This document shows positions 3,001-11,600 of a stretch of DNA of 64,000 nt, piece after piece; the first letter of the stretch is position 1; each line of letters opens with the position of its first letter. Source of the DNA: Vitrella brassicaformis CCMP3155. Taxonomy: Eukaryota; Protista; Chromerida. The translations under genes and the position numbers were made by a program. The notes beneath the pieces are model-generated. The model was not told where the DNA came from. It saw nothing but the letters and a program-made list of their open reading frames with translations, and did not search any database. Location of the stretch: positions 388,856-452,855 of the forward strand of contig CDMY01000385.1 in the NCBI GenBank assembly GCA_001179505.1, in the 5' to 3' direction.

Positions 3001-5900
3001 CCACCGAAAGCACCATCAAACCATGCTGCTGCGATTGACTGGGGCCCTCTCTCCCTCACCCCACACACACCCACACCTTTTGTAAGATAGCCGAGTCACG
3101 TCACATACCTCTCCCACGCACAGGACACAACACACCACACCACACGCACCCGTGCCGTGCCGTGCCGCCAGCTAGGATAGCCATCTGCCTTCTGTATGTG
3201 ATTTGCTGTAAAAGGTGACTGACTTACCTACTGACCGACCGACCGGCTGGCCGTGTGCAGTGTCGATGGATGGATGGATAGATGGATGGATGAGACGTAC
3301 CTAAATGCGATCGACGACGGGTGTCTGTCTGTCTGTCTGTCTCTGTTGTCATCTTCTGGCCAATATGCAAGTGAGCCGGTGGCGTCACGCGCCGCCCGCC
3401 CCACGCCGTGCTGTGCACCGAGGAGAGAGGGACAGACCAGACCAGACCGGCCAACGGTATTTTTGTCTTCTCTCCCACTCAGCCCTCGTGTCTTTGTCTC
3501 GTCTGTGTGCGCGTCTGTCCGTCTGGCTGGAGGGGTGTCTGGGGGGTTGAGGGAGGGGGTGAGGGAGGGAGAGGGAGAGCTGCATTTGGTCTTTTCTAAC
3601 TAGCTCTCTATCGCTTTCGCCTGTGTGCTTTTCCCTGCCCTGCCCTGATTGGTTTGCGAGTCCTCTCTGGGGCGAGATGGATGGCATCGAGAGATAGCGA
3701 TGGATGGGACAGAGTGTTTTCAAAGCGGCCGAGCCGGTGGGGAGCGCGGCGGGCCGGTGATTGAGGGCAGGAGCAGCAGAGAGGCGTTCTTCCTTGCTTG
3801 CTTTGTTTGTCTGTTGGATGGCGTGTTGGTCGGTTCGGTTGGTTGTTTGTATTTGGTGTTTGGTTTGGTGTGGCGGGGCGGAGCTTTCTTTTTTGGAGAC
3901 CGTCGCCGCCGCGCTTTACGTACCTACCGACTTCTGTTGGGTGGGGTTGAGGGAGGGGGAGAGCTGGCTGCTGAGTGAGTGGTCGATTGGTCGGTGCGAG
4001 TGTGCATCAACGGATTTTGCGTCCATACATCCATCCATACAAGCATACATACAAGCATCCACACAGACATCCGCACCACACCCATATATCAGAGATGCAT
4101 ACATACGCACTTACACACTGCACAGGGATGGGTGACCGGATGGGTGGGTTGATGGACGCCAGAGCATGGCACACGAGACATGCAGGGCCGGAGGGGCATT
4201 GTGGACGTGGCGGGGCGGGGCGTGGCTGTGGTGTGTGTCGGGGTTGGTTGGCTGAGTGTGTCGCCATTTAAACACATGTTCGTTCGTGCCTCATGATCAC
4301 CATTTTGTCGCATTGGTTGCATTCATTGGTTGGTTCGCTGATGGTTGGTTGGTTGATTGGTGTGCACAGGGAAGGAAGACCAGACAGACTTCCAGACACT
4401 GCAGACACGTACGTCGAAGAATCCAGTATTTTTCACCGTGCCCTCCCCCCATCCCCCCACGCCCTTCGTGGGTATAGACAGCAGACAGAGAGGAGAGAGG
4501 TATTGATTGCAGCATTGGTGGGTAACTCAGGCATGCGTCCCTTCCTTCACTGGTCTGTTCTTTTTCGCTCGATTGTTTGCACCGCACCTCACCCATGAGA
4601 AGGCTCCGCGTTGTTTGCGTCATATGGGGCTTACGAGTGGGCAGGCATGGCACACACAGCGGCATAGCACTCATCTTTTTCCCTCATCCAGTCCGAACAC
4701 ACCCACTCTCTCTCCCCTCCCACTTGCGCACCGATCGAAGGGCGCACACGACCCTCTGTACGACTCGACTGTGTGTACTTGAGTGCGCGCCTTCCCTCGC
4801 GTTTTTCAACCCGTCGATTGATTGACCCTTGGGAGAGCACCTCTATGCATCAGATTCTTGATGATTCTTCCTAATTAAGCCGACCGGGCTTGCTGCAGAT
4901 GCTGTGGTGGACTGGGGGAAGGAGGGGGTGAGGGTGTCATGTCTGGGGGGCAGGGGAGGGGAGGTGCGTGTGTGGATGCATTTGCACTATTCGGTCTCCT
5001 CTTCATTCATTCTTGACTTGTCGTGTCTCCACTAACTTGGCGTGCTGATGCTGGTGGTGCTGATTGCTGCTTGTGCTGTGTCGATAAGCCATCCCTTCCT
5101 TCCTACCCCTTGCCTGATGACCTTGCCCAATTGCTTGCTTTGCTTGCTCAGTGTGCTATGCTGTGCTGTGGTGTGGTCTCGTGCTCAGTGATGATTGTGT
5201 GGTGTGAGGTACATGATGTATGTGACGTGCTGCGCCCCTAGTCGAATGGATGGATGGATGGATGGGTGGCTGGCATGCGTGGTTCATGACAGGGAGAGTG
5301 ACTGAGGGTTGTTAAGGGGGTGTGGGGGGTTCCATGCAGGATGTGTCCACCTACCTGCCTCGCCCTGCCTGCCTACCTGCATTTTTGAAGCTCACAGCAG
5401 CACAGCACAGCACAGCAGGTCGGCATTCGCGAGTGGTACATACCTACCTTTTCCTGCACCTTACAATACAATCTCACACATGATGCCATATTTAGATTCT
5501 AACAACAATGACATTATGCCAGAGAAGAGAAGAGGCTAAGATGGGATGCGTGCCCCCTTGCCGTGACACATGCACACGCACCTGCTCTCGCTGATGCTGC
5601 CTTCATCCTTCGTCCATCCACTCACTGACTCACTCATCCAGCCGTGAATCGATTTGACGACTGCTGGCCGGTCGGCCGGCCGCCACTCTGCTCGTACTCT
5701 CACTCTGACATGGCGACTGACTCTTGCAGGAGTGTGCCTGTGACCGACTGACTTGACTGGCTGACTGACGCGAGGGGATGGATGGATGGATGGTGAAGAA
5801 AGACCGATCATCATGATGTGCGATGTGCATCGTGCCAGACTGACTTCCATGTGTGTGAACATGCGTGACGCCGATTGAGCTGTAATTATATTCTTGTTAT
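1..5900. repeat. Microsatellite-rich non-coding tract
   Basis: Dense runs of (CTGT)n, (GGAT)n, (GCCT)n, (GGTT)n, (TCAC)n, (CA)n. ORF-track translations here are low-complexity repeat products (e.g. [16 protein letters not shown]). Confidence 0.85.
2027..2326. other. Assembly gap (300 N) adjoining a poly-G tract
   Basis: Run of N followed directly by a G homopolymer. Confidence 0.98.
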
Positions 5901-5922
5901 ACTGACAGCACACACACGCCGT

Positions 5923-6459
5923 TCATTGTCTTCTCCGCAGCTCCCTGCCCGCAGTCCCATCAGCCACCTGTCTGCCCTCCTCGCCACCCACACTCCTGAG
6001 TGTCCTATCCCCACCACCCTCACACATGCTTGTCTTGCTGCGGCCACGTGTGGCCCACTTGCTGTGACACAGGAGCACCACTCCCGTGAGCATCAGTCCA
6101 GCCCCTCCCCACCAGGGCAGAGGCAGCCTCTCGCCAAACACCACACTCCCCGCACACCCGCTCAGCACAAAGCTCAAGGCGAAGTTGAGCGTCGTTGCCG
6201 AAGTCACCGTCATCTCCTTCATCGCGTCAACATATAGTTTCAGCATCACGGCATTCGACAACAGCCCCAGGGCCAGGCACACCGCCCTCAGATGCCACAC
6301 CAGAGAGGCCAGAAGAGCGTCACTGAGTAGCGGCAGGCGGCGGGATAGATCTGCGAGTAGGCTGTCATCGCTCCAGTCGAACGCCATCTTCAGCAGGCAG
6401 GATGCTGCAGCGCCACACAGGGAGCTCTTCACTGATTTCAGAGGCAGTCGCATCCCCAT
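5923..6459 (-). CDS. TMEM42: Transmembrane protein 42-like (EamA/DMT-like small membrane protein)
   Basis: MGMRLPLKSVKSSLCGAAASCLLKMAF...LGLLSNAVMLKLYVDAMKEMTVTSATTLNFALSFVLSGCAGSVVFGERLPLPWWGGAGLMLTGVVLL matches my recollection of the TMEM42 pattern (N..M...F...L...S...A...NF..S...G..VFGE....WW.G..L...G..L). Apparently single exon; start codon chosen by eye. Confidence 0.75.
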   Translation of the reverse strand: MGMRLPLKSVKSSLCGAAASCLLKMAFDWSDDSLLADLSRRLPLLSDALLASLVWHLRAVCLALGLLSNAVMLKLYVDAMKEMTVTSATTLNFALSFVLSGCAGSVVFGERLPLPWWGGAGLMLTGVVLLCHSKWATRGRSKTSMCEGGGDRTLRSVGGEEGRQVADGTAGRELRRRQ

Positions 6460-6671
6460 GGTGACTTTCAGAGCGATACCGAGAGATTTACCGATGGATG
6501 ATAAGATGCTGGCAGCTGTGGCATCGCACCGCCTTTTCGCTTCCTGTCCACTGCCGCCCTGAAGCCGCCCCGGCATCGCTCTGCATCTCAGCGCTTGCTC
6601 AGCGCCCCTTCCTTTGCGTCCATTCCCGTCACCAAGCCGCGTCCCCGTCATCAAGCCGCTCCTTCGCCACC
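6460..6671. promoter_or_regulatory. Putative bidirectional promoter (TMEM42 / LAGLIDADG gene)
   Basis: 212 bp between divergent start codons; the downstream ATG sits in a GCCACCATG context. Confidence 0.45.
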
Positions 6672-7780
6672 ATGCATCTGGCGATGATGATGCGACGCAT
6701 CTCCAGCAGCTTCGCAGCCGCTTGTCACTATGGCCGTACATCAGCACCATCTCCATTCCGCATCTCAGCACCGCCCTTCCGCTTCCTGTCCACAGTCGCT
6801 GCCAAGCCTCTCCTCCGCCATCGTGAGGCTGCTGGATGCCTGTCGCTGGTCAATCAAGACAGGCGACCCCTGACGACCCCTCAAATCGCCGGCCTCATCG
6901 ATGGAGAGGGATGCTTTTGGCTGTACAGGGGCGTCTACCCAAGGTTCAGCCTTCTAGAGCATCTGCAACAGTCCCTGGGTGTTGGCAACCTCTACTCGCA
7001 TATGGGTGCCAACCTTATTGCCTACGAGATTCAACTGAAAGAGCAGTGTCGTCGGCTGGTTGAGGTGTGTGACGCCTTCCCGCCACTGACGGTGAAGGGC
7101 CACGACTACGCCAAATGGAGGGAGGTCGTTCTCCGCCAGCACAAGAAAGGGGTGGCTGCAAGTCGCCACGAGTGCCTTGGCATTGCTGAGGAGATGAATC
7201 GTGGCCGCCCACATGGTGCTTCGACTGGCCTGGAGCTCTTCCATGACAGCAGCAGCATCAGGGAAGACGAGCTTCTGCAGTGGCTGTCGGGCTTCATCAC
7301 AGGAGAGGGCTTCCAGTGCCGCAAACTTTTGTGAGATTTGAAATCGAGCAACATCCAGCAAGCGCAAGACTGATGTGCTTCATTCGCGACTTCTTCGATG
7401 TCGGCCATGTGTACCGAAAGAAAAACGCCACGGCTTGGAACGTCTTCAAGCGAGATGACGAGAGGAGGCTGATCTCCCTCTTGTCCGACTGGCCCCCCTT
7501 TGGCTGCAAGCTGATCGACTTCATTCGCTGGCGCAGCTTCATTGAAGACAGTGACGAAGCCAGAAAGATGCACGGCAGCAGGTGGAAACATCACTTCGAT
7601 TGGCAGCCGTACGACCCAGCTGAGTCCCACCTTGCCTGGTACACGTGCAAGTATACCCACTTTCGATCAGATGTGCAGAGAGACAAACTCAGGCAATACC
7701 TGGCGGAGGGGCGGAAGCGAATCAGAGAGGAACGCAAGAGAGAGATGCATGGTGCGGATGGACCACAGGGCACTGAGTGA
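6672..7780 (+). CDS. Double-motif LAGLIDADG homing-endonuclease-like protein with N-terminal organellar presequence; frameshifted as assembled (possible pseudogene)
   Basis: Motif 1 IAGLIDGEGCF (6885-6911) is followed by LQQSLGVGNL and PPLTVKGHDYAKW. Motif 2 WLSGFITGEG (7281-7310) continues in the -1 frame as RFEIEQ...LMCFIRDFFDVGHVY...PPFGCKLIDFIRW. N-terminus MHLAMMMRRISSSFAAACHYGRTSAPSPFRISAPPFRFLST is Arg/Ser-rich with no acidic residues. No introns. Confidence 0.85.
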
Positions 7781-8685
7781 TGTATACGTGCGTGTAATGC
7801 TGGTCGACCAAAACACACTTCCACGAGACAGATTGCTTTCAGTCATCTCATACTTATATCCGCACGCTCCTCTGCTCTCACCATCTGTTTCTTTCACATT
7901 CGGTCAAGCTGGTGTCCGATTTCATCCAATGCATTTGGCATCCATCACTTCATCAGACAAGCAACAGCCATCACGAGCAAGGCTCGTTTTGCGAACAGGT
8001 GCGTGTTGACAAAGGCGGCGCAGGGAGCCTAACGTCCATGACCATGCTTTCCCTGGTCCACAAGCAAGCACGTCATCCCGCTTTGGACCCCACTTCTTTC
8101 TCAACTACGCACTCTGCCCGTCTGTCTGGCTTTCTACCCTCCTCCCAGGCTGGTGCGCACCTCATCGCGCCACGTCAGCGAGGGGGAGTCATCAAACCAC
8201 CACAGAATCCTTCCCATTCCCGCAGGCACTCACACACACACACACACACACACACACATGAAGATGGACATAGATACCCGACACACAACACAACACAGCA
8301 ACGAAGCCAGTCGTAGCACCACACAACAAAAATACGCAGGGCGGAATGCACGACACATCTCTGTTGTCCCTCTCTGCTGGCTGCAGCTTCAAGGCAGTCG
8401 GACACTCACGCACCGCACACCGAGATAGAAAGATGGACCAAAGCAGCAGGCACGCACACTCACCTCCCTCATGTAATCATGTAGCCATGCATTCCTCCCT
8501 CATCAGCAACACAGGCAGGCACGTCCACATCCATACGTGACACACACGTCATCATACATCCACACACACACACACACACACACAAGGTCAACACACATCA
8601 GCCAGTCACTTAACCAACCATGCGAGCCGATGCCGGCTGCCTCTCTGCAATGCAATCGATGAGAGGCCGGCAAAGACGGCAGCCG

Positions 8686-11600
8686 CTACCTCGGCCCAAA
8701 GTAGAAGTCCATCAGGTCGTCCTCATCATAGTCCTCCTCGTCCAGCTCGTCCTCCCACGACCCCCCACTCGCCCCATCGCCGCCTATCATGTCGTCATCG
8801 TCAACCCCCGCGTCAGACACGCCGCCATACGGGTACGGCGCGCCATACGGGTACGCTGACCAGCCGGTACCGTACATTGACATTGGTGGTATCCCCACCT
8901 CACCGGCGTACATTGCCCATGGCGGCGGATCAATCCCGCGCTCACCAGGCGCTCGCGGGAGGCTGCTCTCGAAGGCAATCGCCGCTTCGTGTGCCAGCCC
9001 CAGCTCACGGGTGAGGTACATCCTGATGGCCGAGACCACACCCGTGTGTGCCATTTGCTGTGCAGCAGCAGCAACAGCAGCAGGGGTCAGCTTAGGCGGC
9101 TCCTGGGTCTTGCCGTGCTGGGCGATGTGGTAGAGAGTCGTACCCTCCCGGATGGCGAAGAGATGGCCGAGCGGGAGTGAGAATGACGCCACGTGGCAAA
9201 AGGGAGAGGCATCCAACCGGAAATCTGAAGAATTATGCACACCAGAATGAATGAGCAGGTGAACGCTGGCATGAGCGTTTCTTTTGTGTGAGTCAGTCAC
9301 CTTGGTGCGAGCCTGGGAACAAGCCAGCGTCCTTGTACTCGCCCTGGCTGGAAGCCAGGAGATCCACATACGCCAGCAGGCGGCCCTTCGACTTGCCCTG
9401 CGTCAATACAGCCACAGAAGAGGCGCGGTGCAAACGCATCCATGCATGTTTGACTCTGCTTGCGCCGGCGACCTACCAGCCCTGTGAGAGGGTCTTGGTC
9501 GCCCTTGGCCTCAGACTGAGGCCGCTGCGGCTGCTGCTGCGGGTCGGGCGCAGGGGTGTCCGTGGGGTTGCCATCGTCATCATATTTCATGCTGCAGGAC
9601 TTCTCATGCTCGCGACTCATCAAGCCACCACGCTGCAGTCGCCACGGATACACAAACCACGGCTCACATGTGGCGCCTCACAAACTACCACCTCCCCGTC
9701 CAGCTTCCATACATCCTCACTACTCACCGCGATGGCCTCCAGCGAGACGGGGATGTGCCGGATAGCTGAAGGCATATAGTCGTTTAGCAGCGAATAGCTG
9801 AAACAGGGAAGAACCCCGCTACGCAGCAGCAGCCAAGGCTCCCGCGCGCCCCGACAAAGCAGGTTCTCTCTCTCTATCCTGAGTGCCGACCGCTCGGCAG
9901 CCGACGCCGCGGGACCGACGCGAAGCTCCGGGAAGAAATACACGCGGCTGTGGCTCATCTGGAAGGGATGGAAGACGCCATCATATCGCCACTTGCACTC
10001 CTTCGGTGGACGCGAGAAGCCGTTCCACAAGGTGGGGAACCCGGCGAGGGCCAGCGAGTGGGCTGAGTGGCCCACCCACAGGCCGAATGACGGAGAGGGT
10101 TGCAATGAAGGTACGGGGCGACGATTCGGAGGTCCGAAGCCCGGAGGCCCCAAAAAGCCGGGCGGCAGGCCTCCGACGCCAGGGAAAGTGGGAGGCGGGC
10201 TGTGGGGGCCGTCGTCATGGCGAGTGGCCTGGGAAGCCGGGCCGACGGCCTCTGGCGTCATTCGCACCTCCGTGCCGAGTCTGCTGTCCAGCCGCACCTC
10301 AGTGCCGCTCATGTAGTGCACCACGCGGAACCGGAGCACTTCCTGCCGGCGCCAGGCGATGGTATCATCGCCACAGCCGACCTTGGGAGCAATCATGCCC
10401 GCAATGCTCTTGGGGGGCCGCGACCGAGAGAGCGCGACAACGGTGTCCCCACGGCGTGGGTCACGCTCGAGCAACCCTGGAATCGAAACAGACGTACCAG
10501 AGGCCACAGATACATTCAGAGGGCATTGGATCCCTCTGCCGGAGAAATGCTATCTCACCTGGTATGTTCGGGGAGTATTCTGGATATCTGTCCGCCGTGT
10601 ACGCACCTCCTAATTCGGTCTCCGTGGCACGCGCGATCATTCTCACGTTGGTGAGGGTCGCCCCCAATCTCTCGGATAGGCGCAGCAGCACGCCGACGAA
10701 TGGCGACCCTGCGCTCACGAAGAAGGACACCTCAGGATGCCAGAAGGGGACGTTGCTCCCAATCTCCTCATCGGCGACCTTCGTGGGCGGCGGCTCCTTG
10801 GTGGGGTCAACCACTGATGTGGTCAGCCGCTTGCCGTCCGGTGTGAAGGTCTCCAGCCAGATGGCTGTCGGCAAGGGGTCGGGCGGCTCGCGATGGTCAT
10901 GCGCCTGAATGGCAAGGGAGGGCATCGACGCCTGACTTGGCGGGGGCGGGGTGGGGACCCACGCCTGTGCGGGAGAGGTTCGTGAAGCCCTTCGTCTCTG
11001 CCTGCCTCTCCCTCGACCCCTCCCCCGCGAAGGAGGGGCAGAGGACGGAGCGGCTGCTGCTGCTGCTGCTGGTGGAGGTGGGTGGCCCTTCTGGATGAGT
11101 TTGGGCGGCGGGGGAGGTGGGGGAAGTGGGATCCACTGGGGCTTCCTCCAGGGTTGAGTGAACCGAACCAGCACGACACTGCCGTCCACGCCAGCTTTCG
11201 TCGGGACCAGCAGCGCCGCGGGGGACAGCCTCTCGAATGAAGAGCCATCAAAGATTACCACCTCACCCTTGATTGCATCCACAGGCTCGTCCGGTCGCTG
11301 ACGACTGACACCCTCGCGGGCTGCGCGGCGTGCCTCGTACAGCGCGCGGTCCGCCTCGTATGCGGCGCCGACGTCGAGCGGCGGCACCGGGCCCTCACCC
11401 CCTCGTGCAGCGCCCTCATTTAAAGGAGGACTCTTCTTCGGAAGGCGCGCCGCATGCGAGTTGCAGAAGAACGCCCTGGAGACCACACAGACACGAACAG
11501 CAAGGATTGAGTACTCTTTCCGTGCTGGTCGGTGTCTGTGTGTCTTGACATACATACCTGCCGTGTGCCACGAACATAGTGGTGGGGAAGAAGGACAGTC

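Follow-up and report, generated by a model that had tools for sequence, protein, structure and literature searches.

LAGLIDADG enzymes are nearly always selfish open reading frames (ORFs) lodged in organellar introns or inteins; domesticated examples encoded in the nucleus are few. The locus considered here, at positions 6672-7780 of a 64,000-nucleotide stretch (the window) of the nuclear contig CDMY01000385.1 (452,855 bp) of Vitrella brassicaformis CCMP3155, carries two LAGLIDADG motifs, and its first ORF corresponds to 395,539-396,189 of the record. A preliminary description had taken it for an intronless ORF that encodes a domesticated endonuclease re-imported into an organelle, and the question is how far this is borne out. 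The analysis points, with a probability of about 0.8, to a pseudogene with weak transcription, which belongs to a nuclear LAGLIDADG family not described before.

The locus does not hold a single ORF. Its length of 1,109 nt is no multiple of three; frame 0 ends at the TGA at 7332-7334, and it is frame +2 that encodes the second domain (7328-7777, with the stop at 7778-7780). When the locus is aligned with a second copy on the same contig (hereafter the paralog) and with two proteins of Alphamonas edax, a 16-nt deletion is found just past the second motif (Table 1), and this loss shortens the first hairpin of domain 2 by about 5 residues. Two further deletions, both in frame, remove 3 and 9 core residues of domain 1 (36 nt), including the conserved M-N-x-K-D/E segment; in the alignment with I-PnoMI, the 9 lost residues correspond to the stretch where strand beta2 ends and helix alpha2 begins. 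Neither domain of the window copy has a complete alpha-beta-beta-alpha-beta-beta-alpha core. Given that the paralog and four outgroup proteins retain the segments that are missing here, the deletions are derived in the window copy.

The break could be only apparent: it might be an error of the assembly, or be bypassed by a tiny intron, by RNA editing or by programmed ribosomal frameshifting. The gene would then be intact and functional, and its product a full two-domain endonuclease imported into an organelle. Both catalytic glutamates and both pocket lysines are kept, there is constraint between the two copies, and at the break there are a run of four T (7327-7330) and a possible 20-nt GT..AG stretch (7316-7335), all of which would fit such a gene. 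The reads argue otherwise. Contigs from four public runs were aligned to 4000-9500 at a likeness of at least 80%; X1 and X3 are DNA runs from two different studies, and X7, which comes from a third study, and X12 are RNA, as shown by spliced CT..AC joints (9224>9301). X1 and X3 each have one contig across 7214-7663 with 0 differences or gaps relative to the broken sequence, and the RNA contigs of X7 are exact and unspliced over 7050-7268, over 7273-7547, which crosses the break with no difference, gap or joint, and over 7525-7806. An assembly error or homopolymer slip at the T run is ruled out, since the alignment with the paralog and the outgroups shows a 16-nt deletion that three run sets reproduce. 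The 20-nt intron is likewise ruled out, because the RNA contig is unspliced there and the real introns nearby measure 76-79 nt. A slippery heptamer of the form X-XXY-YYZ, as used in programmed -1 frameshifting, was looked for at the break and none was found. Moreover, domain 1 lacks 12 conserved core residues in whichever frame it is read. An intact gene is thus largely refuted and highly improbable.

Because the RNA contigs are exact and unspliced, the frameshift is transcribed without repair: the broken sequence is weakly transcribed and is mended neither by splicing nor by editing. The preliminary description had named RNA sequencing as a check, and transcription is indeed detected, but the depth in X7 is 3.5-4.6 at the locus against 100-300 for its neighbours (~1-4%), the frameshift is uncorrected, and X12 has no contigs of the locus. 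The 135-aa ORF at 7373-7777 is found among MMETSP-derived peptides (P0160). At the variant positions there is exactly one other contig, at about half the total depth, which carries the letters of the paralog including its 4-nt deletion at 7693; this means that the genome has two copies at a likeness of at least 80%. One X7 RNA contig matches the locus only from 6887 onward (motif 1, ~6887-6943), in a bin with a mean depth of 40 versus ~4 elsewhere in the locus. Its 30 upstream letters are absent from both the window and L001, the sequence that holds the paralog, and there is a stop in the LAGLIDADG frame five codons before the motif. This contig may derive from another LAGLIDADG gene, or may be a chimeric or chance match.

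What has decayed is well recognizable. Pfam LAGLIDADG_1 (PF00961) matches both halves of the locus with 42.4 and 30.7 bits, compared with a gathering score of 23.1, so that the two motifs, each with its catalytic acid, stand as first described. The pocket lysine of each domain (T/G-x-K-x-x-D-F/Y) is also kept, as LTVKGHDY and FGCKLIDF, in columns that are nearly invariant in a 60-sequence alignment (K176 and K320 of the Alphamonas protein P0003). Because both catalytic glutamates and the invariant lysine of each domain survive even in the window copy, it is likely that the ancestor was an active nuclease and not a maturase devoid of catalysis. Sequence matches in the PDB are to the I-OnuI family, with I-PnoMI first (2.3e-18), followed by I-SmaMI, I-OnuI, I-LtrI and I-AabMI. 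There are no PPR families among the Pfam matches of the locus (E up to 1).

The paralog (P0002; L001:10001-11201, corresponding to CDMY01000385.1 261,009-262,209) lies 134.5 kb upstream in the same orientation, and the proteins are 78% identical. It is publicly annotated as a 271-aa 'Homing endonuclease LAGLIDADG', and it is broken too: it has gained 1 nt (an extra A in an A run, opposite window 7359) and lost 4 nt near the C-terminus (opposite 7693), and its second domain is split into another frame (ORF L001:10698-11201). The lesions of the two copies are at different places and are independent. The duplicated unit runs from 4 nt before the ATG at 6684 to ~100 nt past the stop and is essentially the ORF alone; the upstream flanks of the copies are unrelated (29% identity), and around the unit there are no convincing terminal repeats or target-site duplications. 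Retroposition is unlikely as the copying mechanism: a single contig carries both copies, with the same orientation and 134.5 kb between them, and no trace of poly(A) is left. A 20-nt inverted pair with 85% complementarity (6660-6679 / 7743-7762), centred on ATGCAT, brackets most of the ORF; it is probably due to chance, its right arm being part of the coding sequence.

In the 352 codons that can be aligned, the differences between the two copies number 41 at first, 35 at second and 73 at third positions. By the NG86 method, the ratio of nonsynonymous to synonymous divergence (dN/dS) is 0.32 (leader 0.13, domain 1 0.42, second half 0.29), the excess of silent changes having a binomial p=5e-9, and the synonymous divergence (dS) is ~0.3. 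Divergence at 0-fold versus 4-fold degenerate sites, a more conservative measure with an overall ratio of ~0.6, is 0.095 versus 0.178 in the first half (p=0.024). The excess of silent changes between the copies indicates that the gene was once under purifying selection. As the estimate is drawn from two sequences, the changes are not assignable to branches. There is moderate evidence, from this sequence comparison, that the gene, including its leader, would have been functional for part of the time since the duplication and would have acquired its disabling mutations later.

Several points weigh against this account of a pseudogene that was formerly under selection. The locus is still transcribed, as the exact RNA contigs of low depth and the MMETSP peptide for the downstream ORF attest. 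The two DNA runs may include the source data of the assembly, which makes the RNA contig the more independent witness, and all of the data are probably from no more than one or two cultured strains, so that the species as a whole might not be fixed for the lesions. In the second half, which lies past the frameshifts, divergence at 0-fold versus 4-fold sites is 0.122 versus 0.167, which is not significant. A semblance of constraint could also arise if the copies had undergone gene conversion, or if both descended from an active master copy that is not among the sequences seen.

The continued transcription bears on a further possibility, namely that the truncated product of 216-220 aa, or the RNA itself, has acquired a new function, for instance as a remnant with a role in regulation or in binding nucleic acid. 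The first ORF is open and begins with the strongly conserved leader, transcription persists at a low level, and the first ORF of the paralog is open as well over its annotated 271 aa. Such a product would nonetheless have to work without one half of strand beta2 and without the helix alpha2 cap, both of which every relative conserves, and with a lone LAGLIDADG domain, which needs a partner domain. The 5' half has no RNA contig in X12 and in X7 only the contig that is clipped at 6887, and the paralog breaks elsewhere, so that the two copies have no truncated architecture in common. We consider a function of this kind improbable.

With regard to the origin of the locus, its GC content (57%) and its GC content at third codon positions (GC3, 0.66-0.67) match those of the flanks, and it is surrounded by expressed nuclear genes with spliceosomal introns. 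No group I intron, intein or organellar-genome context was found around 6672-7780, in agreement with the placement first given. Expressed and spliced neighbours together with a matching GC3 on a contig of 452 kb mean that the locus is nuclear and free-standing. A recent insertion of mitochondrial or plastid DNA into the nucleus (NUMT or NUPT), or a fungal or bacterial contaminant, might be considered because the closest characterised enzymes are encoded in fungal mitochondria. This is refuted by the composition, by the intron-bearing nuclear genes on either side, and by the diverged second copy on the same contig; furthermore, the nearest relatives are chrompodellid transcripts at 35% identity, with none closer among 1.84 billion representatives. 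Of all the explanations weighed here it is the least credible.

Intact homologs with a similar leader, which the preliminary description had proposed to search for, do exist, and they are complete and expressed. An exhaustive HMMER search with the paralog against the 1.84 billion representatives gave 907 matches. The best one after the window's own protein is GDKI01034485.1.p1 of Alphamonas edax (P0003, 416 aa; 1.9e-24, 35% identity), and GDKI01009578.1.p1 of the same organism (P0012, 382 aa) is another of the high-ranking matches. The two are complete ORFs of the A. edax transcriptome in EukProt, transcriptome data being all that exists for them. Alphamonas is a colpodellid and is grouped with Vitrella and Chromera in the chrompodellids (PMC6722601). 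Two more members (P0010 and P0031) are on metagenome contigs in ENA of 37.8 and 14 kb, and the contig of P0010 (L003) has sparse, eukaryote-like gene calls and 47-50% GC. The gene call of P0010 (L003:10001-11062) takes the TGA at codon 6 for Trp; with the standard code the ORF starts at Met12 (MASVSYLARLSRKRF...), and a short basic leader remains. Among the 150 best matches, members of the family come only from Vitrella, Alphamonas and these two metagenomic eukaryotic contigs. When the first ORF and the paralog served as queries in word-index protein searches, only the two Vitrella copies were retrieved, and a profile word search gave mainly ordinary organellar LAGLIDADGs; the Alphamonas relatives were found only by the exhaustive HMMER search.

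The members have an architecture in common, with a basic leader, an R-x-A-(A/S)-G-C junction, two domains and a C-terminal extension that contains H-G-x-x-W. In a quick maximum-likelihood tree the six family sequences form a clade with a Shimodaira-Hasegawa-like approximate likelihood ratio (SH-aLRT) support of 93. The neighbours of this clade are GC-rich, bacterial-looking LAGLIDADGs; compositional heterogeneity was flagged, and the sister group is not relied on. The AlphaFold model of P0003 has a predicted local distance difference test score (pLDDT) above 90 for residues 80-365, a disordered stretch over the first 75 residues (<50) and a long extra C-terminal helix, and it superposes on I-PnoMI, I-PanMI, I-OnuI and I-SmaMI with template modelling scores (TM) of 0.75-0.79. 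The window copy, the paralog, the two Alphamonas proteins and the two metagenomic ORFs are thus a clade with an I-OnuI-type fold. In a full-text search of the literature surveyed, no paper was found that links LAGLIDADG proteins to chromerids or colpodellids, save for one incidental co-mention, and the nuclear LAGLIDADG cases in the literature surveyed are plant PPR-LAGLIDADG splicing factors. The family is an undescribed chrompodellid nuclear LAGLIDADG family.

Compared with known systems, the closest are the enzymes of the I-OnuI family (I-PnoMI, I-PanMI, I-SmaMI, I-OnuI, I-LtrI and I-AabMI), which likewise have two tandem LAGLIDADG_1 domains per chain, the glutamate that closes the LAGLIDADG helix, and a lysine in each P-x-x-T/G-x-K-x-x-D-F/Y. 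They are, however, encoded in fungal mitochondrial introns or in rps3 fusions, are AT-rich and have no leader, whereas here the gene is nuclear, GC-rich and free-standing, with a leader of ~50-75 aa, an A-A-G-C junction and a helical C-terminal extension of ~60-90 aa. The window copy differs from these enzymes also in being frameshifted and in missing part of domain 1. The Alphamonas proteins P0003 and P0012 resemble it in the basic leader, the H-R-A-A-G-C junction, the two domains and the C-terminal H-G-x-x-W, but are complete, have none of its deletions and contain a W-x-W-N-R motif that is missing from both Vitrella copies. Plant OTP51 and other organelle-imported splicing factors of this kind are also products of nuclear genes with a LAGLIDADG fold and an N-terminal extension of organelle type, and thus likewise cases of a homing-endonuclease fold that has moved to the nucleus. 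OTP51 differs in being fused to PPR repeats and acting in the splicing of plastid group II introns; the Vitrella locus has no PPR match and keeps its catalytic residues. Chromerids are not known to have organellar introns. Yeast HO is a nuclear, free-standing, domesticated LAGLIDADG enzyme; it goes back to a VDE-like intein, bears a zinc-finger tail and does its work in the nucleus. It is not known to be related in sequence to the present locus beyond the fold.

The leader is the part of the claim on targeting that stands in modified form. An acid-free basic leader of about 50 aa with an R-x-F/L|S motif is present, but the start that had been assumed (ATG 6672) is not conserved in the paralog, in which homology begins 4 nt ahead of the ATGATGATG start at 6684. 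From this shared ATG the acid-free run is 47 residues long (51 from ATG 6672), with 8 Arg/Lys, and it contains no hydrophobic core of a signal peptide (maximum Kyte-Doolittle value of a 15-mer, 0.84). Nucleotide identity with the paralog is 91.5% over the leader and 12 of the 17 changes are at third positions, which makes it, together with its dN/dS, the most constrained part between the Vitrella copies. Leaders are not conserved in sequence between genera; in both Vitrella and Alphamonas they are acid-free with R-x-F/L|S/T motifs. The family-specific junction that follows (Table 1) probably marks the start of the mature protein, as judged from the family alignments. A point against targeting is that, in this GC-rich window, ~10% of random ORFs of at least 100 aa have an acid-free start of at least 51 residues, and the composition of the leader alone is therefore weak evidence. 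Judged by composition and analogy, import into the mitochondrion is plausible. Targeting to the plastid was rejected, as the leader has no core like that of a signal peptide and the relatives are in an organism without a plastid genome.

The two copies would then be dispersed DNA-level duplicates of a free-standing nuclear gene for a monomeric, two-domain endonuclease of I-OnuI type. Its product would have consisted of a basic leader of ~50 aa, an R-x-A-A-G-C junction, two domains with catalytic glutamate and pocket lysine, and a C-terminal helical extension. The ancestral gene would have been under purifying selection after the duplication, and the lesions would have come afterwards. The window copy has since been deprived of 36 nt in the core of domain 1 and of 16 nt just past motif 2, so that its product can now be at most 216-220 aa long and comprise the leader, what is left of domain 1, and the second LAGLIDADG helix without the rest of its domain. 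Decay of the paralog was independent, through its own +1 and -4 nt changes. Given the family, the chances are about even that the intact ancestor entered the mitochondrion to bind or cut nucleic acid, as its Alphamonas counterparts would.

Of the domesticated endonuclease that had been proposed, the family-level part is retained, given that the family is nuclear, free-standing and leader-bearing, with past purifying selection and expressed counterparts in Alphamonas; for this particular locus, with its frameshift and 12 lost core residues, the proposal fails. A domesticated and re-imported endonuclease stays a live hypothesis for the family because presequence-like leaders are present in three genes of two genera, because the leader is what selection has most preserved in Vitrella, and because no plastid genome has been seen in colpodellids (PMC6722601), so that the mitochondrion holds the only organellar DNA in Alphamonas. 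More specifically, the intact members (two in Alphamonas and two in unidentified eukaryotes) might be nuclear-encoded, imported into the mitochondrion and engaged in cutting or recombining the tiny, fragmented, recombining mitochondrial DNA of myzozoans, which we regard as a tentative and rather unlikely role. Against domestication, the family is patchily distributed, both Vitrella copies have decayed, and the duplicated unit is barely more than the ORF, all of which fits the decay phase of a selfish element.

These same three features support the view that the family is a selfish, free-standing homing-endonuclease gene that spreads in nuclear genomes and acts on nuclear DNA, with the Vitrella copies at the end of a cycle of invasion, fixation and decay. 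The leader and a C-terminal cluster of Lys/Arg would in this case serve localisation to the nucleus rather than to the mitochondrion; the C-terminal tail does contain a basic cluster, RKRIREERKRE, and in the tree the clade adjoins GC-rich bacterial-looking LAGLIDADGs and not organellar ones. Nonetheless, the unrelated flanks of the two copies offer no common target site, the tree position is possibly an artefact of composition, and the recurrence of acid-free leaders with the same motif in Vitrella and Alphamonas, despite their differing sequences, is typical of presequences. A selfish nuclear gene is for these reasons a possible but unlikely description of the family, and the decayed member of a formerly selected, leader-bearing nuclear family remains the preferred reading of the locus.

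As the locus and its relatives show, a nuclear lineage of I-OnuI type exists in chrompodellids, which are free-living and sister to the apicomplexan parasites; in this lineage catalytic residues are kept, the leader is under selection and a new C-terminal extension has been added. If the intact members enter mitochondria, they would be candidates for the nuclease behind the recombining, fragmented mitochondrial DNA of chrompodellids; if they stay out of mitochondria, they would be one of the rare cases in which free-standing genes for homing endonucleases live and die within a nuclear genome. In annotations, both the locus and the paralog, whose truncated ORF is now public under the name of a homing endonuclease, should be flagged as pseudogenes.

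Table 1. Coordinates of the features at and around the LAGLIDADG locus, in window positions.
Feature	Position	Strand	Basis and remarks
Small EamA/TMEM42-like membrane protein gene, head-to-head neighbour	5923-6453	-	Pfam EamA 27.8 bits, just below cutoff; atlas best cluster 'Transmembrane 42-like' 0.96
Degenerate 46-nt direct repeat (78%) of leader-coding segment 6768-6813 (APPFRFLST...KP)	6526-6571	+	Repeat search; tblastn of P0001 residues 29-79 onto 6526-6681, E=8e-4
Upstream in-frame ATG, Kozak-like context (MHLA)	6672-6683	+	Outside the stretch common to the paralog
Leader, 47 acid-free residues, Arg/Ser/Ala/Pro-rich, with R-x-F/L|S motif (FRFL|ST)	6684-6824	+	Composition
Family-specific junction R-E-A-A-G-C-L-S-L	6822-6848	+	Common to the Alphamonas proteins (H-R-A-A-G-C-x-A-L); family alignments
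LAGLIDADG motif 1, IAGLIDGEG	6885-6911	+	Catalytic Glu 6906-6908; sequence, Pfam and PDB alignments
Sites of in-frame losses of 9 nt (after 6925) and 27 nt (after 6948), compared with the paralog and every outgroup	6925-6949	+	DNA alignment, family alignments
LAGLIDADG motif 2, LSGFITGEG	7284-7310	+	Catalytic Glu 7305-7307; sequence, family alignment
Breakpoint, 16-nt deletion after 7314	7311-7336	+	26 nt versus 42 in the paralog versus 13 codons in the Alphamonas proteins; shifts the frame into TGA 7332-7334
Remainder of LAGLIDADG domain 2 and family-specific C-terminal extension (H-G-S-R-W ... D-P ...)	7337-7780	+	Frame +2, stop 7778-7780; Pfam 30.7 bits; PDB I-AabMI domain 2, 1.9e-7
3' flank alignable with the paralog, end of the duplicated unit	7781-7880	+	DNA alignment; ~65% of aligned positions identical, fading out

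The head-to-head neighbour had been named as TMEM42 and is borne out by the atlas cluster, with a borderline Pfam match (Table 1). Its RNA contigs (X7 4731-6461, X12 5892-6492) end at ~6461-6492, ~190 nt short of the start of the LAGLIDADG locus. The downstream gene, on the minus strand, has two GT..AG spliceosomal introns, 9224-9301 (76 nt) and 9396-9476 (79 nt), which are joined in the RNA contigs and absent from the DNA contigs as joints. The degenerate repeat of the leader-coding segment is intergenic, 242 nt upstream of the segment that it resembles, out of frame with the ORF and not present in the upstream flank of the paralog; it may be the scar of a duplication or insertion event.

Dozens of contigs, in every run, stop with unrelated loose ends at simple repeats or microsatellites at 5397-5417, 5776-5793, 8218-8271 (CA-rich) and 8550-8593; these stretches are dispersed simple repeats that break short-read assemblies. 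X12 and X13 are small RNA-like runs that are labelled with other organisms and also contain the neighbouring genes. A marine-sediment metagenome run (X11, 2025) contains 47% of the sampled 31-mers of window positions 5600-8400, and three further runs contain 7-10%; near-identical Vitrella DNA seems to be present in marine sediment samples.

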